The notes beneath the pieces are model-generated. The model saw only the letters and a program-made list of their open reading frames with translations. It had not been told where the DNA came from and ran no database searches. Made by a program: the position numbers and the translations under genes. Shown piece by piece: positions 6,075 through 21,417 of a DNA stretch of 64,000 bases (positions within the stretch are counted from its first letter, which is position 1; each line of letters starts with the position of its first letter). The stretch comes from Leidyana gryllorum EB-2025a (lineage: Eukaryota > Protista > Apicomplexa): NCBI GenBank assembly GCA_048772705.1, contig JBLWGC010000035.1, forward strand, positions 372,001 through 436,000. Reading direction: 5' to 3'.

Positions 6075-8120
6075 TTAAATGTGTGCTTTGCGTCCATGCC
6101 GTGCACACTCTGGAAAGGGAGTGTCTATAAATGTGTTGACCCCATTGGGGATCGGATTGTAATCAAATGTGTCACTGAACACCCAGAGCTGGAACTGATT
6201 GATTGACTCATCTGGGTAGGTATTGGGGACTTCAAGACTCAAAAAACTGTTCCGTCTTGGTCTGTACATCTCTCGTGGTAGATAGAGTCCAAACGCGTAT
6301 ACATCCTCTCCTCTCACATTTGCCATCAGTCCCAATCGCAGATCGCCCAGGGCACTATTGACAGAGATATTCACTCCAACCTCAATGATGGCGGAAGTCC
6401 AACTCCTCACACACAGCTGTACCTTCACTGCCTTCGCGTCAATGATCGAGAGATCAAGGGCCCTTTCAAAAGGCTCGGCCTCTATGATGGCGTGACGTTC
6501 GAGATATCTTTCCGTCACGAGCGAATCTGTAAGCTTATGGTATCTTCTAATCAATCGACCGTTTTTGAATGCGTCAAACCCATCACCTCCGTCGGCCAAG
6601 AAGTCATTGGTCATCACTTTGTACTTTCGACGTGGCTTTAGAAGCTCGCCCCCAATCCAAACATCCGCGATGATATTGTCAACATATGTGAATCGCATAT
6701 TGGCCACTCCAAGCATCAGACGCGGGGTTTGGAACTGTTGTGACAAGAGTGTACGCACTAACTCTCCTGACATCTCCATGAGAACCATGGTGTTCTTGAA
6801 GGGAAGCGCGCTTAGAACAACGTCAGCAGTCACTATGCCACTCGGAAGACACCCACGCACATTGCCCGGATTCACCACTGCAATGTCGGCCTCCGGTTCG
6901 GCCGCCCGCATCGCATCAGCTATCAGATGCACCAGTTGGGACTCCTCAGATCTCAAGATGTCACCCGATGCGTCGGCTGCCCGGCTGATTGATCGACAAG
7001 TACGCCCAACAATCCGCCGTCGTCCAGCCTCAGCGTCACTCGCAGCACGAGCGACAATGTCTCGCACTGAGGTGACAACAGGGTCGCCTGCAAAGGAATC
7101 TTGGTCTGGATTCCGACGGGAAGCCCGTATCAGTCGACCTGTCGCTTCGGCGGAGGGAACGAAGCCAGGACGAGAGAACTTGAGAGTTAAGTGCCCGACA
7201 TGGGATCCATAACATCCAGCTTGCATGGCTAATACTGGTTCGGTTCGGTGGTACGTTATGTGTGTGTGGCCGCTTAAAACGGCGGAATACCTTCCGTCCA
7301 AATTCTCAAGGAGGTCTTTCCATTCCTCTGAATCTTCACCAGCCGGATGTCCGCCTTGGTGAGCAAGGAGTACCAGCGCGTCACACCCGTGTTCGTTGAT
7401 GAGCGTGTCAGCCTCGCGATTCGCGGCTTCCACCATACTGCCGAAACGAAGCCACATCAGACCTCCGGTTCGGACCAGTAATGGAACAGATTGAGTGACG
7501 ACACCCACGAAGCCAACTTTTCGGCCGTTTGGCATAACCCAGATATAAGAGGGTGAATAGACAAGTGAGTCATCTTTTTCGTTGTAGATATTAGCCGCTA
7601 GGTGAGGTATGGAGGCATGGCCGTTGATCTTTTTATGCAGCCAGGTAACTCCGCGATCGAATTCATGGTTGCCCAGGGCCACTACACGTGTGTCCAGAGC
7701 ATTCAGGACGTCCAATACAGGCTGCTCATCGAGTGAAGCACATATGTACTCTGTAGCCCCCATATTGTCACCAGCAGACACAAGAATAGAGTTTTGAATG
7801 CCATATTGATGTCGCAGTTCTTGAATTGTTTGGGCAAGACTTATTGCTCCATACTCAGCTGTGCCAGCTTCGTCACGCCTCTGAGAGAGGCGGCCATGTA
7901 AGTCGTTGAAGAAGAAGATGTGGGCTTCGTCATTGTGAGCTAAGCGGCGTCGTACTGGATTGGTGATGACTTTGGGCTGGGGGAGGACGGGAAGACAAGT
8001 GTCAGCTGCAGAGTTGAAAAGTCCGCGGCCGAAGAGAACTTGGCGTGCAAGATCGTCTGGTCTAGCCTGAGTGGCAGTGGGGAGGGCAAGAAGTGAAGCG
8101 GCAACAGCAGATAGGAACAT
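6075..8120 (-). CDS. Secreted 5'-nucleotidase/UDP-sugar hydrolase family metallophosphoesterase (copy A), intronless
   Basis: Signal peptide from ATG 8120 (MFLSAVAASLLALPTA). Motifs FNDLHG, AGDNMG, GNHEFD, AHQG, GHTH; C-domain NPGNVRG, LPFKN, NDFLADGGDGF. No hydrophobic C-terminus. Confidence 0.92.
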   Translation of the reverse strand: MFLSAVAASLLALPTATQARPDDLARQVLFGRGLFNSAADTCLPVLPQPKVITNPVRRRLAHNDEAHIFFFNDLHGRLSQRRDEAGTAEYGAISLAQTIQELRHQYGIQNSILVSAGDNMGATEYICASLDEQPVLDVLNALDTRVVALGNHEFDRGVTWLHKKINGHASIPHLAANIYNEKDDSLVYSPSYIWVMPNGRKVGFVGVVTQSVPLLVRTGGLMWLRFGSMVEAANREADTLINEHGCDALVLLAHQGGHPAGEDSEEWKDLLENLDGRYSAVLSGHTHITYHRTEPVLAMQAGCYGSHVGHLTLKFSRPGFVPSAEATGRLIRASRRNPDQDSFAGDPVVTSVRDIVARAASDAEAGRRRIVGRTCRSISRAADASGDILRSEESQLVHLIADAMRAAEPEADIAVVNPGNVRGCLPSGIVTADVVLSALPFKNTMVLMEMSGELVRTLLSQQFQTPRLMLGVANMRFTYVDNIIADVWIGGELLKPRRKYKVMTNDFLADGGDGFDAFKNGRLIRRYHKLTDSLVTERYLERHAIIEAEPFERALDLSIIDAKAVKVQLCVRSWTSAIIEVGVNISVNSALGDLRLGLMANVRGEDVYAFGLYLPREMYRPRRNSFLSLEVPNTYPDESINQFQLWVFSDTFDYNPIPNGVNTFIDTPFPECARHGRKAHI

Positions 8121-8148
8121 GTAAAAAAGGCAAAAGAGTCGCGTCGCC

Positions 8149-10815
8149 TCAAAGCGCGAAGGTGGCAAAGACCAGCAGTAATACAGTACAACTCAGGAAG
8201 TGACGGAAGGGAACGGATCCAGAATGGGGTGCTACATCCAGATGCTTGATGAGTCCTTCTGGGAAGAAAGGGTTACCATCAAACACCTTGGACTGGAGTG
8301 TCATCTCGAGATATCTGGATTTGGTGGTGACAGTGAAAGTATGGCGTATACTGTGGGTGACGGGGCCGTCGAGGTCAGTCTTTTCGAGTGCATACTCGGT
8401 CAAATCCAGCAGGTTGTTGCTGTTGCTCATGTGTTTGACTGTGATGGTGAAAGGACCTGGAACGGTGACAGCTTTCACCACCTCGATGTTATATAGGACT
8501 GTGGCTACCCGACCTGGTGGTCCGACAACCACTTGGTGTGGCTGAGAGACGATGACAACTTGTCCATCTTGTAGCAAGGCGCTAACGTCAATAGCCCGCT
8601 CCAAGTTCGGTTTGGGTATGATCTCGTCGTTGAGAGCTGACAAAGACAGAGTGTGGTTTATCACTGCATCGTAGAGAGAAATCCCCATTGGCAGGGGCAG
8701 TCCTACTTCGAGGGATGTCAGAACGTCTGTAAGGCTATCGTAAGCGTCACCACCCTGAATGAGGAAGTCGGGAAGAACCATCAGAACCTTTTCACTTTCA
8801 GACGCTGCGCGACCTTTCGTTTCACTCCGCCCAGCCCCCTCTGATCGTCTTCCATTGGCTTCGCTAAAGGATGGTGAGTAGTACTCGAGAGTATTGCGTA
8901 GAATAGAAGCATTTGTGTTTTGCTTTCGGCCGGGGTCGTAGCGGTAGGTGAAGCCGGATACCTGAAATTGAGCACTTTTGCCTGCATAGCGGAAATGCAA
9001 GAATTGCTCTTCAAGAACGTCTAACAGATGCGCCGTCGTGGTGGGAAGTACTATCAGTTCGTCGAAGAAAGGTATGGAGTTCCACACGTCAATATTCGTC
9101 AATCGGTTGTGGCGATCATTTGTTGTCAACCAGTCCTCCCGAATCCCACCATCGTTCATCAAAGCCACCATGGGTATGCCCTGGTAAGCTTTGGTGCGGA
9201 GACTCTGTCTCCAATACTCGCCGGCGTGCAACATCGCATCAGCTATGTGGGCACCCAATACCGTCTCCTCGTCGCCAAGCGGTCGAGTCCAGGATTCCAG
9301 TAGTCTTCCGAGAGCCCTCCGAGGTAACTTTGTTTCCCGCTCACGCCACGCTGTGGCCACTATGTTCCCGACTGCGCGAGCGCGGGTTGGGATACTGAGT
9401 TCTGGAACGGCCAAGTTGTTCATGTACCATAACCCATTCTCAGGGTCATGCAAGTAGGGCGTGTAAGCGGGAATGACCTCACACTCGGTTGACAAGAGTT
9501 CCTGAGACATATGATCGAATTGTAGAGTACAAGATGCCAGATTGATACCGAAACCATCAGTTTGAATAACCGTATGACCAAATACTTTCCATACATACGA
9601 CTGATGGGTGTGGGCCGAGAGCACCAAATCAACTGACGGATCTAAAGCTTGGAGAAAACGGGCAAACTCGTGAGTTGGATTGTCTCGGATGAACTTCTGG
9701 GGGTCGTCCCCCCATCCACCTTGATGTATAATGACCACCACTGCATGACAAGTGTGCTCTCGTCGCAGTTGCAAGAGAACTTTGTCTGTAGTCTGAACAG
9801 GTGGCAGAACAGTAATAGTGTCCCTATTGTTGGGTCTGACAATGTCTGTAAATTCTTCGGTAACGGCAGCCGTGAAGCACACATTGTACAGCTTATCACC
9901 ACGAGCGACCGGAACGATGCGGAAACTTGGGAATATTGGATCTTGGGTGGATGAATTTACAATATTACTACACAAAGATTTAGTGTTGGGGTCCAATAGA
10001 TGGTCCAACCCATGCTGGAATTCGTGATTCCCTATCGCGTGTATATCAACACCCCACTTTGCCAATACTTGATAAGCAGGTATGTCAGAATCCAGACAGG
10101 ACTCGGCTTGAGAAGCTCCAATAGAGTCACCAGACGTAGCCAAGATCAAATCCGGCGAGTTCGATCGCAACCAATCCAATCTGATCGTCATACTGCCCGC
10201 GCCGCGTAGTCTTGAATCGTAGTTGGAGGGGACCATGTGGCCGTGCCAGTCATTGATTGATACTATTACGATCTCATCCAAATCAGTTCCAAAAGGTAGG
10301 AAAACAGTTGCCTCGCGAGAAACTTGCTGCTTACTACGGGTGTTTAGTAAGCTCAGAGAAATGTATGGGGGCTCCTGATGCTGATCGCGTACAGCAGCTT
10401 CGGCATCCCGTGCCTCCTCACTGTCATCGACTCTCAACAGGATCTTGAATGCTGTTTCGAGAGCAGCAAATGACCGATCTGCGTTATATTGGATCTCATC
10501 TACCCAGAAAAACGCTGGCAGGGACTTTTCATCAACCGCCACCTCGTATTGATCCTCATCCTCTACCTCCAAACCATCGCCATAATCATCAGCAGTCCCA
10601 CTCTCCTCCTCGTCTTCCTCCTGGTTATTTGTTGGAGATTCGTGACCATTGTTATTCAGTATTGACCCTTCCACCTCGAAAACTGTTCCAGGCGTAACAC
10701 TTTTTCGCAAGGGACGTACATATAGACGAAACCGGTCAACTGCATCCTGCTGTCTTGAACTACCGACCCCGACTTGTACGAGTAAAGCCGCTAGTAATCG
10801 TCGCATCATCATCAT
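8149..10815 (-). CDS. Surface (GPI-signal) 5'-nucleotidase family protein (copy B), intronless
   Basis: Signal peptide. Motifs INDWHG, SGDSIG, GNHEFQ, IHQG, SAHTHQ, NDGGIRED, PDFLIQGGDAY. Hydrophobic C-terminus ...FLSCTVLLLVFATFAL-stop. Confidence 0.9.
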   Translation of the reverse strand: MMMMRRLLAALLVQVGVGSSRQQDAVDRFRLYVRPLRKSVTPGTVFEVEGSILNNNGHESPTNNQEEDEEESGTADDYGDGLEVEDEDQYEVAVDEKSLPAFFWVDEIQYNADRSFAALETAFKILLRVDDSEEARDAEAAVRDQHQEPPYISLSLLNTRSKQQVSREATVFLPFGTDLDEIVIVSINDWHGHMVPSNYDSRLRGAGSMTIRLDWLRSNSPDLILATSGDSIGASQAESCLDSDIPAYQVLAKWGVDIHAIGNHEFQHGLDHLLDPNTKSLCSNIVNSSTQDPIFPSFRIVPVARGDKLYNVCFTAAVTEEFTDIVRPNNRDTITVLPPVQTTDKVLLQLRREHTCHAVVVIIHQGGWGDDPQKFIRDNPTHEFARFLQALDPSVDLVLSAHTHQSYVWKVFGHTVIQTDGFGINLASCTLQFDHMSQELLSTECEVIPAYTPYLHDPENGLWYMNNLAVPELSIPTRARAVGNIVATAWRERETKLPRRALGRLLESWTRPLGDEETVLGAHIADAMLHAGEYWRQSLRTKAYQGIPMVALMNDGGIREDWLTTNDRHNRLTNIDVWNSIPFFDELIVLPTTTAHLLDVLEEQFLHFRYAGKSAQFQVSGFTYRYDPGRKQNTNASILRNTLEYYSPSFSEANGRRSEGAGRSETKGRAASESEKVLMVLPDFLIQGGDAYDSLTDVLTSLEVGLPLPMGISLYDAVINHTLSLSALNDEIIPKPNLERAIDVSALLQDGQVVIVSQPHQVVVGPPGRVATVLYNIEVVKAVTVPGPFTITVKHMSNSNNLLDLTEYALEKTDLDGPVTHSIRHTFTVTTKSRYLEMTLQSKVFDGNPFFPEGLIKHLDVAPHSGSVPFRHFLSCTVLLLVFATFAL

Positions 10816-11118: not shown

Positions 11119-14100
11119 TCACGCCATCACGAGCACTGCAGCAACAGCGAGTGCACTAAACGTCGCCAAGTTGCTCAGCGCTCCATCAGGCGCAACTCCA
11201 ACGTCTGTCGGTGAAACTGAAACGTCTGTTGTCGAATCTTCTGTTGCTTGGGTAGGTGAAGTAGTTGTTGTGGTGGTGGTTGAGCTAGTGGTGGTCGTCG
11301 GGGTGGTGGTAGTGGAAGTAGTGGGAGTCTCCTCCGTGGAAGTAGTGGGAGTCTCCTCCGTGGAAGTAGTGGGAGTCTCCTCCGTGGAAGTAGTGGGAGT
11401 CTCCTCCGTGGAAGTAGTGGTGGTGGTGGTAGGAGGTGTCATGGTGGTGGTAGATTCCTCCGTGGAGGTAGTAGTGGTAGTGGACTCCTCAGTGGTAGAC
11501 TCCTCTGTGGCTGGGGTAGATTCCTCCGTGGTCGACTCCTCAGTGGGCGGGGTAGACTCCGTAGTAGTGGTCGTGGACTCCTCAGTGGGCGGGGTAGAAT
11601 CCTCAGTGGTAGACGCCTCGGTGGCCGGGGTAGATTCCGTAGCCTCAGTGGTAGACTCCTCAGTGGGCGGGGTAGAATCCGTAGCCTCAGTGGTAGACGC
11701 CTCGGTGGCCGCGGTAGAATCCGTAGCCTCAGTGGTAGACGCCTCGGTGGCCGCGGTAGAATCCGTAGCCTCAGTGGTAGACGCCTCGGTGGCCGGGGTA
11801 GATTCCGTAGCCTCAGTGGTAGACTCCTCGGTGGCCGGGGTAGACTCCTCGGTGGTGGTGGTGGACCCTTCCGTGGTGGACTCCTCAGTGGCCGGGGTAG
11901 ACTCCGTAGTGGTGGTGGACTCCTCGGTGGCCGGGGTAGACTCCTCGGTGGTGGTGGTGGACCCTTCCGTGGTGGACTCTTCAGTGGGCGGGGTGGACCC
12001 TTCCGTGGTGGACTCTTCAGTGGGCGGGGTGGACTCCTCAGTGGTGGTGGTGGACTCCTCAGTGGCCGGGGTGGTCTCTTCAGTAGTGGTGGTAGTCTCT
12101 TCAGTTGTGGTGGTAGTCTCTTCACTTGTGGTGGTAGTCTCCTCCGTTGTGGTGGTAGGCTCCTCTGTAGTAGTGGGGGTCTCCTCCGTTGTGGTGGTTG
12201 TCTCATCTGTGGTGGTGGTGGTGTCCTCTGTAGTGGTGGTAGTCTCTTCAGTAGTGGTAGTAGGCTCCTCTGTAGTGGTGGTAGTGTCCTCTGTAGTGGT
12301 AGTAGTCTCTTCCGTTGTGGTGGTAGTCTCCTCTGTAGTAGTGGGGGTCTCCTCCGTTGTGGTGGTTGTCTCATCTGTAGTGGTGGGGGTCTCCTCCGTT
12401 GTGGTGGTTGTCTCATCTGTGGTGGTGGTGGTGTCCTCTGTAGTGGTGGGGGTGTCCTCTGTAGTGGTGGTTGTCTCATCTGTGGTGGTGGTGGTGTCCT
12501 CTGTAGTGGTGGGGGTCTCCTCCGTTGTGGTGGTTGTCTCATCTGTAGTGGTGGGGGTCTCCTCCGTTGTGGTTGTCTCATCTGTGGTGGTGGTGGTGTC
12601 CTCTGTAGTGGTGGGGGTCTCCTCCGTTGTGGTGGTTGTCTCATCTGTGGTGGTGGTGGTGTCCTCTGTAGTGGTGGGGGTCTCCTCCGTTGTGGTGGTT
12701 GTCTCATCTGTGGTGGTGGTGGTGGTGTCCTCTGTAGTGGTGGTAGGCTCCTCTGTAGTGGTGGTTGTCTCATCTGTGGTGGTGGTGGTGTCCTCTGTAG
12801 TGGTGGGGGTCTCCTCCGTTGTGGTGGTTGTCTCATCTGTAGTGGTGGGGGTCTCCTCCGTTGTGGTGGTTGTCTCATCTGTGGTGGTGGTGGTGTCCTC
12901 TGTAGTGGTGGGGGTGTCCTCTGTAGTGGTGGTTGTCTCATCTGTGGTGGTGGTGGTGTCCTCTGTAGTGGTGGGGGTCTCCTCCGTTGTGGTGGTTGTC
13001 TCATCTGTAGTGGTGGGGGTCTCCTCCGTTGTGGTGGTTGTCTCATCTGTAGTGGTGGGGGTGTCCTCTGTAGTGGTGGTTGTCTCATCTGTGGTGGTGG
13101 TGGTGTCCTCTGTAGTGGTGGGGGTCTCCTCCGTTGTGGTGGTTGTCTCATCTGTAGTGGTGGTTGTCTCATCTGTGGTGGTGGTGGTGTCCTCTGTAGT
13201 GGTGGGGGTCTCCTCCGTTGTGGTGGTTGTCTCATCTGTGGTGGTGGTGGTGTCCTCTGTAGTGGTGGGGGTCTCCTCCGTTGTGGTGGTTGTCTCATCT
13301 GTGGTGGTGGTGGTGGTGTCCTCTGTAGTGGTGGTAGGCTCCTCTGTAGTGGTGGTTGTCTCATCTGTGGTGGTGGTGGTGTCCTCTGTAGTGGTGGGGG
13401 TCTCCTCCGTTGTGGTGGTTGTCTCATCTGTAGTGGTGGGGGTCTCCTCCGTTGTGGTGGTTGTCTCATCTGTGGTGGTGGTGGTGTCCTCTGTAGTGGT
13501 GGGGGTCTCCTCCGTTGTGGTGGTTGTCTCATCTGTGGTGGTGTCCTCTGTAGTGGTGGGGGTCTCCTCCGTTGTGGTGGTTGTCTCATCTGTGGTGGTG
13601 GTGGTGGTGTCCTCTGTAGTGGTGGTAGGCTCCTCTGTAGTGGTGGTTGTCTCATCTGTGGTGGTGGTGGTGTCCTCTGTAGTGGTGGGGGTCTCCTCCG
13701 TTGTGGTGGTTGTCTCATCTGTAGTGGTGGGGGTCTCCTCCGTTGTGGTGGTTGTCTCATCTGTGGTGGTGGTGGTGTCCTCTGTAGTGGTGGGGGTCTC
13801 CTCCGTTGTGGTGGTTGTCTCATCTGTGGTGGTGGTGGTGTCCTCTGTAGTGGTGGTGGTCTCCTCCGTTGTGGTGGTGGTAGTCACCTCCAAGTCTAGT
13901 TCTACCATTTTACCCTCATCGTTGCCAAGTTGATTCTTGTAGTAAATCCTACTACGCAACGTTACTTCGAGATGATCGGCGCTGTGGGTAATCGGGCGTC
14001 TGAACTCAAAAAGAGCACCGTCGGAATTGATCTGGTCGACCTCCCACTCCTCAGACCACTCGGTGGAGCGAGCATCTTCGTCTTGTTCGCCGGATGTACT

Positions 14101-17100
14101 GGCCACGACGTCCACTTGGAAGGGGCCACGGAGTGTCTCCGCAGCATCGACCGAAGCCTTCAGGGTAAGTTCGAGCTGGTCGTCAGCATCGACAGCAAAT
14201 TGCGGAGCTTGAATGAACTCCCAAGAAATCTTCGATCTCAGATCGCTCACAGTGTCATATGAGCGAGAGTATGAGCGCGGTTTGACTGTTCCCTCGGTCT
14301 GTTGTTTATGGGTGAGGTATTCTTCCATATTGATGGCATCAAAGATGCCGAGGTCCCGAACGTCTTTGCCCAACAAAAAGCCATCGAAATTGTGACCACC
14401 TCCGGCCAGGAAGTTGTTGGTCACGATTCTGTACTCTGAGTCGGGTAGGATCGGAAGACCAGTCTCCTCTATAATGAGGCTGTCTTCGAGTATTTCATTG
14501 TGCTCAGCAGATCCATGATCCGCGAATTTCCAAGTGAATCCAGACACTTGCATGATGTAATCGTTTCGAGATTCGTGCCACTGGTTCTCGAGAATCTTGA
14601 CCAGGTCAGCTCCAGTGACGGTCATGAGCACCAGTGAGTTGGAATAGGGCAAAGCTTCCCAAACGTTGTGTCGAGTGATCACTCCAGTCTCAGCGGTATT
14701 CCAGTCCGCCATCACAGATTGGCAATGAGTGAAGGCGAATTGCACGTTGGAGTCGGACTTCTGAGCAGCCCAGAGGAATGAGTCAGCAACCAGTGCTCCA
14801 AGAGGACTTTCGGTATACTGCGGCTGAGGCCAGTCGACAGAGGTTTCTGCCAAAACTTGGGCTCCAACAACGGCAGCGTCCGCGAAAGCTTGCATAACGA
14901 CATTCTTGACCTTCTCGGTACGATCAGACACTCCTGATGCAACGAGTCCGGTCGCCGAATCTATCCACTGCTCCTTCTCCTCATCCCAGTGAACGGTGTG
15001 CGTTGTGGGTTGGAAGCTGCCAGACACTGACAACAGCTGGTGAGACGAGCCGTCAAAGACGAGCTCGTAGACACTCAAAGCACGGCCATGGCTCCAACCT
15101 TGACCAACTACAGCAGTAGTGGTTCCGTCAACAGGGTTCCAAGAGTAAGACTGGTGTGTGTGAGCACTGGAAACGATTTGCACTCTGGGGTCCAAGTCTT
15201 TCAAGAAGTGCGCAAATTCAGCAGTTGGATGGGCCTCAACATATTCATCAGCCGTCTCCGCCGATGTCTCAGCGCCCTGATGTATGAGGGCCAAGACGAC
15301 GTCGGCACCTTCCTCCAAGACGGTATCCACCAACTCGTTGACCCCATCAACAGCTGAACCCACATCGATCTTGCTGGTAGCCAGCGCGTTGGTCGTCTGT
15401 TTCAGACTCTCGAGAGTGACTCCAATGACGCCAATCTTGTAGGTCTCACCCTCGACTTCCACGTCGATGATGGTGTGACCCGGCATCGCCTTCTCGTTGG
15501 TACCTTTGACCATCACGTTGGCTCCCAAGGGAGTACCGACGAAATCTGTGATGGACAAAAAGTAATCCAGGCCAGTCTCGTGGCCGTAGGCGTGGTCAAT
15601 GTCGTGATTGCCCAGAACTGTGGCTTTGGTCCCCCACTGTTTGGCAATCTCCAAGATCGGCTGGTCGTTGTTCAGAGCGGATTCCACTTGGGTGGCGCCG
15701 ATGGTGTCGCCGCCACTCAAAACGATTTGGGCATCCACATTGCGAGCCGCCAAGTCATCCAATGTTAAACTAGTTGCAATGGCGCCGTAGTACCCTTCTC
15801 CGGCGGTATTCTTCGTCTGGCGGATGGCTCCGTGGATATCATTGTAAACAACAACTTGGACAGTTTTGTTGGCGCGGAATTTCAGTGAATGCGTGTGGCT
15901 GACTCCAGCTGGCATCGGATTTCTATCGAATACCTCCGAGAAGAGTGCGAACTCAAAATTCACCTCAACTCCGTCCTCAAACGGTACAGGGATTGACGGT
16001 CTCAAGGGGGTTGTAGAGGTGAGCTCTCCATCGATCTCAATCCAACGAGTTTCATCCGGTTGCCTGCTGTCTGTGTATACCAGCCGGAAAGGACCTTGAG
16101 CGACGAGATCTTCTTCAGGTAACTCGTATACCAGAGCGAGGAGACCCAAGGATTGGTCATATGTAACAGAGGTGAGTTCAACATGTGCGGAGACATCGGC
16201 GGTGATATCCACTGCCCGTTCGAATGGGACCTCCACAAGCTTCCCATCATTCTCAGCTGCCATTGCTTCATTGTATTCAATGGTATATTGGTTGTCAGCG
16301 TCTGCTCTGTGCTGACGGTCAGTACCCTTAGCGAAATCCACAAAGTTGTCCCCTCCAGGAGAAAGGAAGTTGTTGGTGACGACACGGTACGTAGCCTCCA
16401 ACGTCATGGGAACATACTCGTTCGTGTGTCTGTCGATCACTTGCATGGAGTCCGCCAGAATACGATGGCCCAGTTCTTGAGTAGGATCATATTTGTAGGT
16501 CATACCGCTGATCTGAAGATGGTACATCCCACGCTCGCTTCCTGAAGCAGCGATCCACTGATGCTCAAGTACGCCCTTGATGTCGGTACCGGTCATAGTC
16601 ATCACCTCCAACTCATTGCTGAAAGGAAGGGTGTCGAAGACGCTACGAACAGTCACGTCTCCCTCTTGCCAGTCCTTTCGAATTCCACCGTCATTGGTGA
16701 AAGCGATCTCTACAGTTTCATCGGACTGGCGAGCTTTGTGCAACATCGCGTCAACAATGTGGCAGCCCAACTCGGTCTCGGAGCCGCCGGGCGCACGCCA
16801 AGTCTTAGCGATCTTACCAGTGATCCGCGAACCAGTTTCGTCAGCAGAGACGATCGCTCGCTTAATTTCCTCATTCACTTGCAGAAGCAACTCTGGTAGC
16901 TCAGCTTCTGCGTCAGGTGACAGAGGTTCGCCGTTTTCCTCCCATCTCTCAGTGTCGTAATTGTAATAGATTGATTGGCGGACAGAAGTGTACGAGACAG
17001 AAGGTGGTGCTACGAGTTGTCGTGTGTTGCGCGAGAGCTCAAAGTCAAAAGTGGCCAGGTTTACTCCATAGGAACCCGCCTGGATAACCGGTGGTAGATT

Positions 17101-18396
17101 GGGATTGTTGGTACTGCTGGCCCAGTTGTAGTTTTGATGAGTGTGGGCCGTGGCCAACACATCAATGTATCGGTCTTCAGTGTTGAGATTCTGCAAAAAT
17201 TGGGTAAATTCTGATCCAACATTGTTGTCCATCTGGGAATCAACATCCTTGTTGGACGCCGAACCGCCTTGGTGGTACAAACAAATAACGATATCACATT
17301 CTTCTTCTTCTTTGAGGATCTTAGCGTACTTGTTGGCTTCCGGGGCAGCTTCCAAAAACTTGAGCGCTGCCACGTTGTCATATACCACGACGGAGGGCAG
17401 AGACTCCAAAGTAACCCCTACAAACCCGATCTTATATCTCTCGCCTTCGCGGTCAATCTCGACGATATGTGTGGCATCCAGAAAGACGTCTCCGGGTTGT
17501 TTGCCTTCCGGAGCGTTCTCTCCCCACACGATATTGGCCCCCAGCTGAGGGAATTTGAACTTGGTTTCGGCATCTTGCATGATGCTTTCATATCCGCGAT
17601 CAAATTCGTGATTGCCAAGGGCCTGGCACTCAGTTCTCCACATATGAGCTATAGTCTTGGTGGGGTCATCATCGTTGGCGGCAGACTCGAACAGAGTGCC
17701 GCCAATCGTGTCTCCCACGCTGACCACAATCAAATCTTCTCCAGCATTCTCTTTTCTCATTTGTTCAAGCTTCATTGTCATACTTAGGGCTCCCGAGTAT
17801 GCACCAGCGTTGTTTGGGCCTTGTTGTACAATGTATCCATGGAAATCATTGTAGGCGGCAACACGGATGATGTCCACCTTCGCCTCTACGGGGACTACCG
17901 ATTGAGTGCTGTACACCGGTTCGTCTTTGTAGTGGACTGTCAAGGTAAAAGGGTAAGCTCCGGCAGCTGTTGTCTTGGGGATGCTGAGTAACACCTTGAA
18001 TCTTTGGCTCTCTTCCTTAGTAAGCGCCGCAAGTCTTGTGGCATACCCAGGCTCCCCAACTTCAATCGACTCAACAGATATGCCTATACCAGTCAAACCT
18101 TCTACCTTCACCGTGTATTCACCGCGATGCTCGCGATCAACTTGCTGTATGATACCAGAGATTTCGTACAATTCACCAGGATGAGCGACACGATAAGTGC
18201 CACTCTTGTTTTGTGTGTCTAGAACAACGTATGGATCGATCGTTTCGTTCGCGATCGTAGGGACGGTCTCTCGACGGTGGGACTCCACCAGAGAGTCGCG
18301 AAATGCTTTCTGCGCGGCCGTGAGAGGTACCTCGGGCAACCTTCCGGTGGCCACGGCCAGGCATACTCCGAACAATCCTAGTAGTTTCAGATACAT
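11119..18396 (-). CDS. 2425-aa surface protein: signal peptide, two tandem 5'-nucleotidase modules, Thr/Glu-rich mucin stalk and GPI signal (copy C), intronless
   Basis: Module 1: YNDFHG, GDTIG, GNHEFD, AHTHQ, NDGGIR. Module 2: YNDIHG, GDTIG, GNHDID, AHTHQ. About 900 aa of T/E repeats follow. C-terminus GALSNLATFSALAVAAVLVMA. Confidence 0.93.
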   Translation of the reverse strand: MYLKLLGLFGVCLAVATGRLPEVPLTAAQKAFRDSLVESHRRETVPTIANETIDPYVVLDTQNKSGTYRVAHPGELYEISGIIQQVDREHRGEYTVKVEGLTGIGISVESIEVGEPGYATRLAALTKEESQRFKVLLSIPKTTAAGAYPFTLTVHYKDEPVYSTQSVVPVEAKVDIIRVAAYNDFHGYIVQQGPNNAGAYSGALSMTMKLEQMRKENAGEDLIVVSVGDTIGGTLFESAANDDDPTKTIAHMWRTECQALGNHEFDRGYESIMQDAETKFKFPQLGANIVWGENAPEGKQPGDVFLDATHIVEIDREGERYKIGFVGVTLESLPSVVVYDNVAALKFLEAAPEANKYAKILKEEEECDIVICLYHQGGSASNKDVDSQMDNNVGSEFTQFLQNLNTEDRYIDVLATAHTHQNYNWASSTNNPNLPPVIQAGSYGVNLATFDFELSRNTRQLVAPPSVSYTSVRQSIYYNYDTERWEENGEPLSPDAEAELPELLLQVNEEIKRAIVSADETGSRITGKIAKTWRAPGGSETELGCHIVDAMLHKARQSDETVEIAFTNDGGIRKDWQEGDVTVRSVFDTLPFSNELEVMTMTGTDIKGVLEHQWIAASGSERGMYHLQISGMTYKYDPTQELGHRILADSMQVIDRHTNEYVPMTLEATYRVVTNNFLSPGGDNFVDFAKGTDRQHRADADNQYTIEYNEAMAAENDGKLVEVPFERAVDITADVSAHVELTSVTYDQSLGLLALVYELPEEDLVAQGPFRLVYTDSRQPDETRWIEIDGELTSTTPLRPSIPVPFEDGVEVNFEFALFSEVFDRNPMPAGVSHTHSLKFRANKTVQVVVYNDIHGAIRQTKNTAGEGYYGAIATSLTLDDLAARNVDAQIVLSGGDTIGATQVESALNNDQPILEIAKQWGTKATVLGNHDIDHAYGHETGLDYFLSITDFVGTPLGANVMVKGTNEKAMPGHTIIDVEVEGETYKIGVIGVTLESLKQTTNALATSKIDVGSAVDGVNELVDTVLEEGADVVLALIHQGAETSAETADEYVEAHPTAEFAHFLKDLDPRVQIVSSAHTHQSYSWNPVDGTTTAVVGQGWSHGRALSVYELVFDGSSHQLLSVSGSFQPTTHTVHWDEEKEQWIDSATGLVASGVSDRTEKVKNVVMQAFADAAVVGAQVLAETSVDWPQPQYTESPLGALVADSFLWAAQKSDSNVQFAFTHCQSVMADWNTAETGVITRHNVWEALPYSNSLVLMTVTGADLVKILENQWHESRNDYIMQVSGFTWKFADHGSAEHNEILEDSLIIEETGLPILPDSEYRIVTNNFLAGGGHNFDGFLLGKDVRDLGIFDAINMEEYLTHKQQTEGTVKPRSYSRSYDTVSDLRSKISWEFIQAPQFAVDADDQLELTLKASVDAAETLRGPFQVDVVASTSGEQDEDARSTEWSEEWEVDQINSDGALFEFRRPITHSADHLEVTLRSRIYYKNQLGNDEGKMVELDLEVTTTTTTEETTTTTEDTTTTTDETTTTTEETPTTTEDTTTTTDETTTTTEETPTTTDETTTTTEETPTTTEDTTTTTDETTTTTEEPTTTTEDTTTTTTDETTTTTEETPTTTEDTTTDETTTTTEETPTTTEDTTTTTDETTTTTEETPTTTDETTTTTEETPTTTEDTTTTTDETTTTTEEPTTTTEDTTTTTTDETTTTTEETPTTTEDTTTTTDETTTTTEETPTTTEDTTTTTDETTTTTDETTTTTEETPTTTEDTTTTTDETTTTTEDTPTTTDETTTTTEETPTTTDETTTTTEETPTTTEDTTTTTDETTTTTEDTPTTTEDTTTTTDETTTTTEETPTTTDETTTTTEETPTTTEDTTTTTDETTTTTEEPTTTTEDTTTTTTDETTTTTEETPTTTEDTTTTTDETTTTTEETPTTTEDTTTTTDETTTTEETPTTTDETTTTTEETPTTTEDTTTTTDETTTTTEDTPTTTEDTTTTTDETTTTTEETPTTTDETTTTTEETPTTTEETTTTTEETTTTTEDTTTTTEEPTTTTEETTTTTEDTTTTTDETTTTTEETPTTTEEPTTTTEETTTTSEETTTTTEETTTTTEETTPATEESTTTTEESTPPTEESTTEGSTPPTEESTTEGSTTTTEESTPATEESTTTTESTPATEESTTEGSTTTTEESTPATEESTTEATESTPATEASTTEATDSTAATEASTTEATDSTAATEASTTEATDSTPPTEESTTEATESTPATEASTTEDSTPPTEESTTTTTESTPPTEESTTEESTPATEESTTEESTTTTTSTEESTTTMTPPTTTTTTSTEETPTTSTEETPTTSTEETPTTSTEETPTTSTTTTPTTTTSSTTTTTTTSPTQATEDSTTDVSVSPTDVGVAPDGALSNLATFSALAVAAVLVMA
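11230..13886 (-). repeat. Coding minisatellite of ~21-nt units encoding Thr-rich heptads (TTEETPT / TTEDTTT / TTDETTT), then TEESTP(A/P) units and 24-nt TTSTEETP units
   Basis: Directly visible tandem repeats, e.g. gtggtggttgtctcatct and gtagtggtgggggtctcctcc recurring dozens of times on the + strand. Confidence 0.97.
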
Positions 18397-18696: not shown

Positions 18697-21417
18697 TCAT
18701 TCCACGTGTATGGATGGCTGAAAGATGTTTGAGCGGCTTCTGTGCAGTGGAGTCATTGTTTGGCAGGTTTCGGGGTTCACAAGTGGCTCGTCAAGAAGAG
18801 CAAAGAGCCAAGTGGATGTATAAGCTAAAATGAGGAGGACGACAGGACTCGTACTCAGCAGACCACTCATCCCGTTGTCTAGCGGCATATATCTCGCCTG
18901 CAGGCCGCGCGGCAAAGGTGTGTTCAAGGCATCTTGATTGTGGGCTTCAACACTCAAGTATTGCAAACCGCGTTCTCTGATCTCTTTTGTTGACATCAAC
19001 AACGTTATCTGATGGGAACCAATGTGGGCTTCGACGGAACCAACATAGACACGCGCTCGTTAATGAGGCTCTTGAGAGGGGTGAGGCTCAAGCTGAGCCT
19101 CGAGTTCCCACTTCGCCGCGTTGTTGGTGCAGGCGGCCTTCGTGGTATCTATATGTCGCAGATGCGTCAACTGGACCGAGCTATATATCGGTGGCATCAC
19201 AAGATAGAGATCAGTCTGTCCAGTCAAGACCTTCGAGCAATGAAAGTTGATGGTGATGCTGATCTCGGTCATCGTCCCAGATTGAGGTGGTCCCGTGACC
19301 TCCAGTTGGCAACTATCAGTCTTATTGTTCCCGGCTAAGAGCGCTCTGTAATCTGGAGGCAGTGAGAGTGATGTTTCTTGAACACCCTTGTTCCAGGCGA
19401 ATAACCGAAACGCGTCAGCGACTTGATACGTCGTCTCATTACACCGCGTGCTTGGGATTCTCGAGATGGCCGAGATTGCATCTCCTCCGGGCCGAACAAA
19501 GTCAGGGATAGCAATTAAGTACTCGCCGTCTGATACCAACGGTTGTAGGTTGCCTGATTGGTCGAAGACCTCCATGGACACAATCTGGAACGTGTCCTCA
19601 GCGGAATTCGGGGAGAACTCGTAAACAAGCCCACGGCTTGATGTCAGAGTACGCCACTTTCGTCCCCGTCCGCGTATCCGAGAAAAGTTTTGCTGCTCCT
19701 GAAAGAGATCCAGCGACTCAAAACCCTTCAGTCGACAAACCCACAGTGTATCCGAAAACGGCACAATGCGACTCATCTTTTGCCGGTCCAGAGCGTGCGC
19801 TGAATCCAGAAGGAAGCCCCCCGCACCATCCTGGAATTCAATACAGCTGCCGTCAGACTGGGTTCTTCATCCAGCATAACCGTCTCCACTGCATCTGCCA
19901 CCAATCGTGCGAGACCATTGTCTTCCATCTCAGACACATCAGGGGCAGGCATGCGGCATCGAATATCGCCGTGGTGAGGGTTCGAATTTGCTTCCTCGAC
20001 TTCCGCCTCCCAGAGTTGCAGCATCTCAAAGATTCTCTGTGCGTCAGCCTGCCCGTCCACCCACTGTTGATCGTAGCAAGATTCCCAAAGACAATGATCA
20101 ACTACTTCTACATTGTGACCGACAACGTCATAAGCAGTCATTCGGCCGTGATTGAACTTAAACCGGTGCAATGCGAACTCTTGTAGTCTTCCTCGTGTCT
20201 GTACAACTGACCGAGTCCACCCGACCGGCACATTTGAGTGCGCAAGGTCATCAGCGGTCTGTGTGATGTACAGCCCCTGCTTTGAGCTTCCGCCGACAAT
20301 CAAGTCCACATTCGTGTCCAGTTTGGAGATCAGTGTCAGGAATTCGCTGTCGGGGGCCGAAGAATCGCTGAGACTGTCATGTACCAGCGCTATCACAGCT
20401 GAGCATCCCAACTCTTCCTTCACACCTTCGGCCCAAATATTTCCCGGGATGTGAGGCTCTTCAATACTCCAGTGCTCCCGGGCGAAGAGTGGAACACTGT
20501 TCAGCGCGGAAGACGGCAGAAGCCCTATGAATCCAACCTTATACTCGACACCATCGTTCCCAATCAGGGACTTGATCTTGTACGGCTCAAATATCCATCC
20601 AGGTATTTCAAAGTCCCTTGGGCGTAATGGACGGGAGTTTGTCCGGTCCCATGCATTTGTGATTATGAGAGACGTCTGTGATGCAAGCCGAAACCGATAT
20701 CGCCAGAAATTGGAAACCTCGAAATTGCCCAGACTTGAGGTCCAAATTCGACAAGAGTCCATTAAGATGTCTTCGAAGCTATCAAGCCCGACTTGATTCG
20801 AGTAGCCAGGCTCACCAACATTATATCGAGTAGACACGAACTCTAAGAGCGGGAATAGTGACTCCCGGAAATGGGACATGGCGTACCCAAAGTGGATCAT
20901 GGAAGCCTTGTTGCTGTCCGTCGAGTCCCGAGACACGTAATTACCTTTGATGCTGCTGATGCTGCCCACTACATATTCGGTCTCGGGAGTATCCAGTGGC
21001 ACCTTGTCTCTCAAACATAACTTCCCCCATTGTATTGCAAAAGCTCCGTTATCAGACGTTACATTCTCGTCAACGGAACTTTCAACAACGAACCATATGT
21101 CAAGTTCTGGATTAACTTCACGGAACGGCGATCGAAGTCTGCGAAGTTCAAAATCTTCCGGCAAGGTCATCCAAACAGGTTCAGTGCCATTGTTATACGC
21201 TTTGAGGAATTGTTCCACCTTGTATCCCGCTCCTTCCTGATGGTGAACGTGTAAAGCCTCCAGTGAAGCGTTGCCAGATGCTTCCACTTCTAAGAAACCA
21301 AAGCTTGTCTCCTGGACCTACCACTTCGGGGTGGTGGTACATATATCCCTGTTGGCCGTGAGCAGTACTCCATAGAAGGAAAGATATGAGTGCAGTCCAA
21401 CTTTTACCCCTCCTCAT
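18697..21417 (-). pseudogene. Disrupted, catalytically degenerate fourth 5'-nucleotidase paralogue (copy D)
   Basis: Signal peptide MRRGKSWTALISFLLWSTAHG. Homologous blocks YKVGFIG, AVIALVH, VDLIVGG, VVQTRG, LARLVADA, IVPFSD, PDFVRPGGD. Frame changes near 21295 and near 19820, and an in-frame TAA at 19060-19062. Metal-ligand motifs are lost. Confidence 0.75.

Follow-up and report, generated by a model that had tools for sequence, protein, structure and literature searches.

The window analysed here, a stretch of 64,000 nucleotides (nt) from the genome of Leidyana gryllorum EB-2025a (assembly GCA_048772705.1, contig JBLWGC010000035.1, positions 372,001 to 436,000 of the forward strand), carries on its minus strand, at 11119-18396, an open reading frame (ORF) of 2425 amino acids (aa) for what we read as a stalked, two-headed surface nucleotidase of a gregarine. 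The frame runs from ATG to stop without a break across 7.3 kb, and its product is built, from N- to C-terminus, of a signal peptide, an N-terminal domain, two nucleotidase modules (head 1 and head 2) that are each followed by an accessory domain, a long mucin-like stalk, and a hydrophobic C-terminal signal. As its best explanation we propose that the protein is an ecto-nucleotidase of the gregarine surface, that its family was acquired from an actinobacterium-like donor and then expanded, and that head 1 is a salvage enzyme carried on the stalk; to this reading we assign a probability of roughly 0.6. A sequence-only reading of the same stretch had already described this architecture, and it holds: the domains stand in the order claimed, within a single open frame, and two Metallophos stretches (E-value 1e-14, 56 bits) and two 5_nucleotid_C stretches (2e-58, 197 bits), all above the Pfam gathering score, follow each other in N-to-C order where they had been placed.

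The two heads

Module 1 matches PDB entry 2z1a with an E-value of 1e-26 and CD73 with one of about 1e-21; module 2 matches 2z1a with 1e-20. Among the NCBIfam models, heads 1 and 2 score 113 and 77 bits, respectively, on UshA against 49 and 46 bits on CpdB (PRK09420), and on NF006934 (PRK09419 models) both cover the half that corresponds to the 5'-nucleotidase, at positions 628-1069 and 628-1088 of 1174. The model of the streptococcal surface-anchored 5'-nucleotidase scores best in NCBIfam, both with the whole head region and with module 2 by itself. The two heads are 33% identical to each other, and module 2 is likewise 33% identical to the paralogue on another contig, C104.

For a residue map the family was aligned to E. 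coli UshA (MG1655 record); the letters at the functional positions agreed with the E. coli sequence, which validates the numbering. In UshA, D41, H43, D84, N116, H217, H252, and Q/H254 are metal ligands and H117-D120 is the catalytic dyad; R379 and R410 clamp the phosphate, and D504 binds the ribose. All nine catalytic positions of the UshA N-domain (seven metal ligands and the dyad) are kept in head 1 and in head 2 alike, with His at position 254 in both, as in nearly all aligned bacterial relatives. At the substrate positions head 1 keeps five of six (R410, F429, N431, F498, and D504) and has Gly for R379. Head 2 keeps N431 and F498; it has Gln for R379, Met for R410, Tyr for F429, and His for D504. 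Both modules of the four aligned bacterial two-headed proteins keep all six residues, and every bacterial module in the alignment keeps R410, F429, N431, and F498.

By these residues head 1 would be a canonical dimetal 5'-nucleotidase of the UshA/CD73 type. Because both clamp arginines and the ribose aspartate are lost around an intact centre of chemistry, head 2 probably does not hold a nucleoside 5'-monophosphate in the canonical manner; most likely it has a different or a much weaker phosphoester activity. The earlier suggestion that the two active sites act in sequence describes something possible, as YfkN and nuclease-nucleotidase fusions show, but it finds no support in a head 2 that has kept its metal site and lost R379, R410, and D504.

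The competing explanation that survives best, and one that we nonetheless hold to be unlikely, is that head 2 is a pseudo-enzyme: head 1 alone would work, and head 2 with the two beta-sandwiches would form a spacer or a ligand-binding module atop the stalk. The substitutions at R379, R410, and D504, in positions of which the aligned bacterial modules always keep R410 along with F429, N431, and F498, would suit such a loss of function, and the long branch of head 2 (1.6) is what relaxed or changed constraint would produce; yet nine of nine metal and dyad residues have stayed intact through a divergence that predates the split from Protomagalhaensia, which one would not expect of a dead site, two residues of the pocket (F498 and N431) persist, and the change of F429 to Tyr is conservative. 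Damaged sites do occur in the family, namely in copy B of the window (D120 to Gln) and in the Protomagalhaensia wolfi protein P0008. The latter has kept its metal site and lost R410, F429, N431, and D504, much like head 2, from which it follows that the nucleotide clamp was lost more than once among the gregarine members.

Phylogeny and probable bacterial origin

Transcriptomes of gregarines supply the best matches of the head region; these proteins come from Protomagalhaensia sp. (39-44% identity), from P. wolfi, and, at a greater distance, from Gregarina sp. Poly. Among 5.8 billion proteins (EukProt included) the eukaryotic matches listed came from gregarines only; bacterial proteins follow with about 150 bits, and E. 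coli UshA reaches about 53 bits. An exhaustive HMMER search of 1.84 billion representative sequences, with head 2 and its accessory domain as query, gave 4170 matches, among them no closer relative of head 2 (best identity 33-34%). Half of the 20 best of these 4170 are long proteins with two or more matched stretches; by motif position two complete modules are present in P0127-P0131, P0133, P0135, P0137, and P0140, and three in P0146, a match of lower rank. The two-headed proteins that carry a name are actinobacterial: they come from Actinomyces minihominis (WP_164996722.1, P0128), an Actinomycetaceae bacterium, and Nocardioides sp. J9 (WP_145723858.1, P0137), the last having its two modules fused to an ExeM/NucH extracellular nuclease. 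Several of the multi-head bacterial proteins bear LPXTG-type signals, and close single-headed bacterial relatives have a Pro/Thr linker with LAKTG, SLH repeats, or CWB2 repeats.

For the tree, multi-head proteins were split into their modules. In all ten bacterial multi-head proteins examined, modules of one chain cluster together, with support of 99-100 for the sister pairs, which means that tandem duplication of the module happened many separate times in Actinomycetota and Bacillota. The gregarine sequences all fall into a single group (80/74; 82% of bootstrap trees), which, with E. coli UshA and a Skermanella protein as the root, nests within an 18-row clade of actinobacterial type (97/92). 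Given this UshA-rooted nesting and the distribution of matches, transfer from a Gram-positive, probably actinobacterial, donor would be the likeliest origin. The 'bacterial-type enzyme' of the sequence-only reading is thereby supported, by the nesting as by the nearest non-gregarine matches listed, which are all bacterial.

Inside the gregarine group, head 1 pairs with the C104 paralogue, and the Protomagalhaensia proteins join these two next (99/95); head 2 diverges below that node, and copy B below head 2. Forcing heads 1 and 2 into a clade costs 14.6 log-likelihood units (p=0.0088 in the approximately unbiased test, with the group defined after the tree was seen and with head 2 as a long branch), and a recent internal duplication of head 1 is rejected by this test. 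A two-headed bacterial donor as the source of the double head was rejected too, the gregarine modules being one clade and the bacterial pairs separate recent duplications. Since the gregarine modules form one clade and the modules of each bacterial protein group together, the gregarine fusion is, as judged from the tree, independent of the bacterial ones; by its branching position the lineage of head 2 is older than the split from Protomagalhaensia. Two histories of the fusion are compatible with this: either the single-headed genes descend from an old two-headed gene, or two neighbours in a head-to-tail gene array were joined by a deletion.

Stalk and putative membrane anchor

The 887 aa of the stalk consist of 59.6% Thr, 20.1% Glu, 6.5% Asp, 6.1% Pro, and 4.7% Ser. 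They are made of a repeat of 21 nt or 7 aa in about 88 copies (Tandem Repeats Finder (TRF), period 21, 12028-13881), with heptads of the form (D/E)(E/D)T(T/P)TTT in which the share of Ser, Ala, and Pro rises towards the C-terminal (membrane) end. Over 12001-14000 the GC skew is +0.37 and the AT skew -0.72, and the repeat also gives rise, in other frames, to two spurious ORFs of 920 and 794 aa (11171-13933). Behind the stalk, by inspection and hydropathy, come D-G-A, an L-S-N spacer, and 16 hydrophobic residues up to the stop, with no cytoplasmic residues; these last 16 residues and the N-terminal signal peptide are the only hydrophobic windows of the whole protein, and neither an LPXTG motif nor a basic tail is present at the C-terminus. 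By its sequence the tail would be a glycosylphosphatidylinositol (GPI)-type signal, a bare C-terminal membrane helix being the alternative. Composition, repeats, and tail sequence thus agree with the Thr-rich mucin-like stalk and GPI-type tail that had been noticed before.

The C104 paralogue, which has no stalk, ends in KDGALAS plus a hydrophobic stretch, closely similar to the PDGALSN plus hydrophobic stretch of the present protein, and the same kind of tail is seen in copy B and in both Protomagalhaensia proteins. Because the stalk-less C104 protein has so similar a tail, the stalk of the present protein sits between the last domain and the anchor signal that are the family's own. Its position in the family plan means that a stalk was inserted into a nucleotidase gene and not an enzyme added to a mucin gene, so that the graft onto a mucin scaffold proposed earlier is better read as an insertion in front of an existing anchor signal; the family's own tail behind the stalk also argues against chimeric assembly.

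Repeats that are 55-74% identical to the stalk at the protein level recur in at least three other very long ORFs of the genome (an assembly of 15.5 Mb in 237 contigs). A protein encoded at C216:140504-144982 (L019 5505-9983, minus strand) begins with a head of about 390 aa that has no obvious family; TTTTEEP/TTTTEAP repeats over about 800 aa, a segment rich in Cys, and a hydrophobic tail follow, and its open frame of 2639 aa extends past the piece that was fetched. This protein indicates that heads of unrelated kinds have been given the stalk-plus-tail design. In a profile search of the genome the GPI biosynthesis genes PIG-A, PIG-M, and PIG-C/GPI2 are present above cut-off. Glyco_transf_7C matches lie at seven places; the one that was checked combines Glycos_transf_2 with Glyco_transf_7C, the catalytic architecture of GT27, and all seven loci are candidate polypeptide N-acetylgalactosaminyltransferases (ppGalNAc-transferases). 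Many proteins of this genome end in GPI-type tails; either their transamidase is very divergent, intron-split, or unassembled, or such tails are plain membrane anchors.

N-terminal and accessory domains

The N-terminal domain scores 22.8 bits on Pfam NPCBM_assoc, just below the cut-off of 24.4. Its AlphaFold2 (AF2) model is an immunoglobulin (Ig)-like sandwich of moderate confidence (pLDDT 74.9), for which Foldseek gives weak matches (TM 0.4-0.5) to Ig-type domains of bacterial glycosidases and Siglec-like adhesins; the domain is common to the C104 protein, copy B, and the Protomagalhaensia proteins. Accessory domain 1, to which a Pfam scan assigned no family, is modelled with a pLDDT of 89.7 and a pTM of 0.81 as a seven-strand sandwich, and the Foldseek matches are fibronectin type III (FN3) domains in the PDB (TM by target 0.54-0.65) and generic Ig/FN3 folds in the Atlas (TM 0.58-0.65). 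Accessory domain 2 is 17% identical to accessory domain 1, and both contain a 'GPF' core motif. A feature search of the Protein Atlas led to bacterial nucleotidase clusters, below the 0.9 level. Fold searches with the N-terminal domain and accessory domain 1 returned generic Ig/FN3 sandwiches only. Nothing about these domains suggests catalysis, and they have the look of spacers or struts. No sequence similarity of the gregarine accessory domain to the domains that follow the bacterial modules was detected by hmmsearch and hhalign on P0015, nor by hhalign on 12 actinobacterial inter-module domains (probabilities of 0.2-0.7%); a common fold is possible, and the unit of module and sandwich may have been transferred whole.

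Genomic setting and paralogues

The neighbours of the gene in the window are eukaryotic and include a protein kinase, a WD40 protein, and a DEAH helicase. The GC content is even along the window, and GC at third codon positions (GC3) is 0.57 in the head and 0.55 in the helicase. Since the neighbours are eukaryotic, GC and GC3 match the window, and the best matches come from gregarine transcriptomes, the gene is not a contaminant, and bacterial contamination is ruled out. An Rfam scan of the 64-kb window gave no match.

Five related places were found in the genome: the present two-module gene, copies A, B, and D in the window, and one gene on contig C104 (Table 1). The members in the window form an array of four tandem copies, arranged head-to-tail about 300 nt apart. 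The C104 protein, copy B, and both Protomagalhaensia proteins share one plan, consisting of signal peptide, N-terminal domain, one module, accessory domain, and hydrophobic tail, all without a stalk, and the start of the signal peptide is similar in the paralogues and in the Protomagalhaensia homologues.

Three details of the array deserve mention. The stop of copy B (8149-8151) and the first in-frame ATG of copy A are separated by about 28 nt on the same strand, against the spacing of about 300 nt between other members of the array; copies A and B may share one transcript, or copy A may start elsewhere. Copy B reads GNHEFQ for GNHEFD, so that the dyad aspartate (D120 in UshA) is a glutamine, and has a large acidic insert in its N-terminal domain; it may be catalytically impaired, though otherwise it appears intact and anchored. 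In copy D, GNHEFD has become GNFEVS, the GHTH motif is lost, and a 5_nucleotid_C match is confined to the C-terminal piece, all of which looks like a decaying copy.

Table 1. Parts of the two-headed protein and related genes of L. gryllorum, with positions in the window unless a contig is named
Feature	Residues or length	Position	Strand	Basis or remarks
Signal peptide	aa 1-18	18343..18396	(-)	hydrophobic core, A-T-G before predicted cut; mean Kyte-Doolittle 1.94 over aa 4-17
N-terminal domain	aa 19-172	17881..18342	(-)	short helix, then Ig-like beta-sandwich (CARDB/NEW3-like)
Nucleotidase module 1 (Metallophos + 5_nucleotid_C)	aa 173-728	16213..17880	(-)	Pfam, NCBIfam, and PDB matches; UshA residue map
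Accessory domain 1	aa 729-845 (~117 aa)	15862..16212	(-)	AF2 model: 7-strand FN3/Ig-like beta-sandwich
Nucleotidase module 2	aa 846-1378	14263..15861	(-)	Pfam, NCBIfam, and PDB match; alignments
Accessory domain 2	aa 1379-1504	13885..14262	(-)	divergent beta-sandwich copy; family alignment
Mucin-like stalk	aa 1505-2391	11224..13884	(-)	TRF, composition
C-terminal anchor signal	aa 2392-2425 (34 aa)	11122..11223	(-)	sequence inspection, hydropathy
Copy A		6075-8168		first ATG at 8120, then good signal peptide
Copy B	888 aa	8149-10815		paralogue, one module
Copy D		~19060-21287		degenerate, frameshift near 19776
C104 paralogue	858 aa	contig C104		one module, no stalk

Proposed function and its alternatives

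Glycosylation, anchor type, substrates, and physiological role we infer as follows. An ancestor of the gregarines would have acquired the nucleotidase from an actinobacterium-like donor, and the family would then have expanded to the four copies of the window and the C104 gene. The signal peptide would route the protein into the secretory pathway, where O-glycosylation would turn the Thr/Glu stalk into a stiff, acidic bottle-brush, and the C-terminal signal would tether it to the plasma membrane, either by a GPI anchor or, failing that, by the hydrophobic tail itself. Mucin domains usually extend by about 0.25 nm per residue. The stalk would thus hold the heads some 200 nm out, beyond the proteins of C104 and copy B, which lack a stalk and would lie at the membrane. 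Apicomplexans usually are purine auxotrophs. Head 1 would turn extracellular nucleotides of the host gut into nucleosides and phosphate, and the nucleosides would be imported by equilibrative nucleoside transporters (ENT) for purine salvage; the corresponding Nucleoside_tran family is found at five places in the genome, all above cut-off. Head 2 would do something else or very little.

Several points weigh against this account. The Gly at R379 of head 1 departs from the canonical clamp, though an Arg lies three residues upstream, and the changed pocket of head 2 could mean no activity whatever. The eukaryotes in the tree are gregarines only, so that the bacterial origin rests on the rooting with UshA and on the distribution of matches. 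In a six-frame, exon-by-exon search of the genome none of the GPI transamidase families Peptidase_C13 (PIG-K/GPI8), Gaa1, Gpi16, PIG-U, and PIG-S (PF10510) gave a match, a result to be read beside the control genomes, in which four of the five gave none either; divergence, introns, or assembly gaps may be the cause, and the GPI anchor is therefore putative. Finally, the gene model comes from genomic DNA, and exact DNA repeats of more than 300 nt in the stalk leave its assembled length uncertain.

The heads might serve mainly to manipulate the host and not to feed the parasite, by removing extracellular ATP and AMP or making adenosine away from the parasite and so damping gut responses, as LPXTG-anchored nucleotidases of Gram-positive pathogens do; we regard this as rather improbable. 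With ENT transporters in the genome and the usual purine auxotrophy of apicomplexans, salvage is the simpler reading, although the sequence does not separate the two roles, which are not exclusive. The long stalk, which puts the heads far from the parasite's own transporters, and the streptococcal surface-anchored enzyme as best NCBIfam match of head region and module 2 would fit host manipulation; moreover, bacterial homologues are regarded as pro-virulent in the literature (PMC10454023).

That the gene model is an artefact, in which mis-assembly joined a nucleotidase to an unrelated mucin gene or the heads are two adjacent genes, is highly improbable: the exact stalk repeats invite collapse or mis-joining, the locus is a head-to-tail array of closely spaced paralogues, and the model stems from assembled genomic sequence, but the frame is open through both junctions, the family's own 'DGAL + hydrophobic' signal follows the stalk as it ends the C104 protein, and accessory domain 1 passes into head 2 through a linker of four residues with no trace of a stop, a signal peptide, or an N-terminal domain.

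Significance

Gregarines are the least studied large branch of the apicomplexans, and little is known about how these extracellular gut parasites acquire purines and what they display on their surface; a full-text literature search for gregarine and nucleotidase found nothing relevant. What the locus suggests is the domestication of a bacterial surface enzyme, which was multiplied and given a new anchor made of eukaryotic parts. It is also a clear case of convergent design, bacteria and a protist having each arrived at several nucleotidase heads on a flexible, surface-tethered linker. Since paralogues with a stalk, without one, and without an anchor lie next to each other, and one head has a rebuilt pocket, the locus further offers a natural experiment that could reveal what distance from the membrane and duplication of heads do for ecto-enzymes.

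The enzyme family, its multi-head layouts, and its display by linker and anchor are known from bacteria, and GPI-anchored 5'-nucleotidases are known from animals; as family and multi-head layout are both known, the protein does not represent a new class of system. The sequence-only reading had not recognised the architecture. For the two-headed layout that impression does not stand, given the ten multi-head proteins among the 20 best matches and YfkN; for the eukaryotic combination of two anciently diverged heads of bacterial ancestry with a mucin stalk of about 900 residues and a GPI-type tail it does, no precedent having been found. A more far-reaching proposal, which we consider doubtful as a whole, is that a eukaryote rebuilt the display of an actinobacterial nucleotidase, with a signal peptide, an O-glycosylated stalk of about 200 nm, and a GPI-type tail in place of the Pro/Thr linker and sortase anchor, and then fused anciently diverged paralogues, head 2, its metal site retained and its nucleotide clamp exchanged, running another phosphoester reaction than head 1; together with membrane-proximal and soluble paralogues of the array the protein would then make up a spatially layered extracellular system of nucleotide processing.

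Comparison with known systems

The closest relatives outside the gregarines are the bacterial tandem nucleotidases of Actinomycetota and Bacillota, which likewise hold two UshA-type modules in one secreted, surface-tethered chain. Their repeat unit, a module plus a beta-rich domain of about 100-140 aa, often measures about 640-665 aa, against 669 aa in the gregarine protein. They differ in several respects: their own modules are mutual sisters (10/10), whereas sisterhood of the two gregarine heads, 33% identical, is rejected; they are anchored by LPXTG, SLH, or CWB2 elements and not by a mucin stalk and GPI-type tail; and in the four that were aligned both modules keep all substrate residues, unlike gregarine head 2.

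YfkN of B. subtilis, a trifunctional nucleotide phosphoesterase, is a characterised double-headed Metallophos/5_nucleotid_C protein, wall-anchored and with heads acting in sequence (PMC8475336, PMC10454023). It resembles the gregarine protein in its double head and its place on the cell surface. YfkN, however, is a fusion of CpdB and UshA with a sortase signal and no mucin stalk, in contrast to the UshA plus UshA protein without LPXTG described here. An origin from a YfkN-type protein was rejected, both gregarine heads matching the UshA/5'-nucleotidase half and scoring higher on UshA than on CpdB.

Vertebrate CD73 (NT5E) has the same two-domain dimetal fold and catalytic residues and is also extracellular and GPI-anchored, making nucleosides for uptake and signalling; unlike the gregarine protein it has a single head, no stalk, and no Ig-like or FN3-like extras, and it is a dimer. 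Its sequence is much more distant, with about 79 bits against the roughly 150 bits that the bacterial relatives reach.

As regards the stalk, the C216 protein of the same genome places Thr-rich acidic repeats, 67-73% identical to those of the present stalk, between a globular head and a hydrophobic tail. Its head is unrelated, and none of the stalked proteins examined in this genome carries a bacterial-type enzyme. The mucin-like surface glycoproteins of Cryptosporidium, whose heads are unrelated as well, would share this general design, in which an extended acidic region of Thr-rich repeats separates the head from a hydrophobic C-terminal tail.

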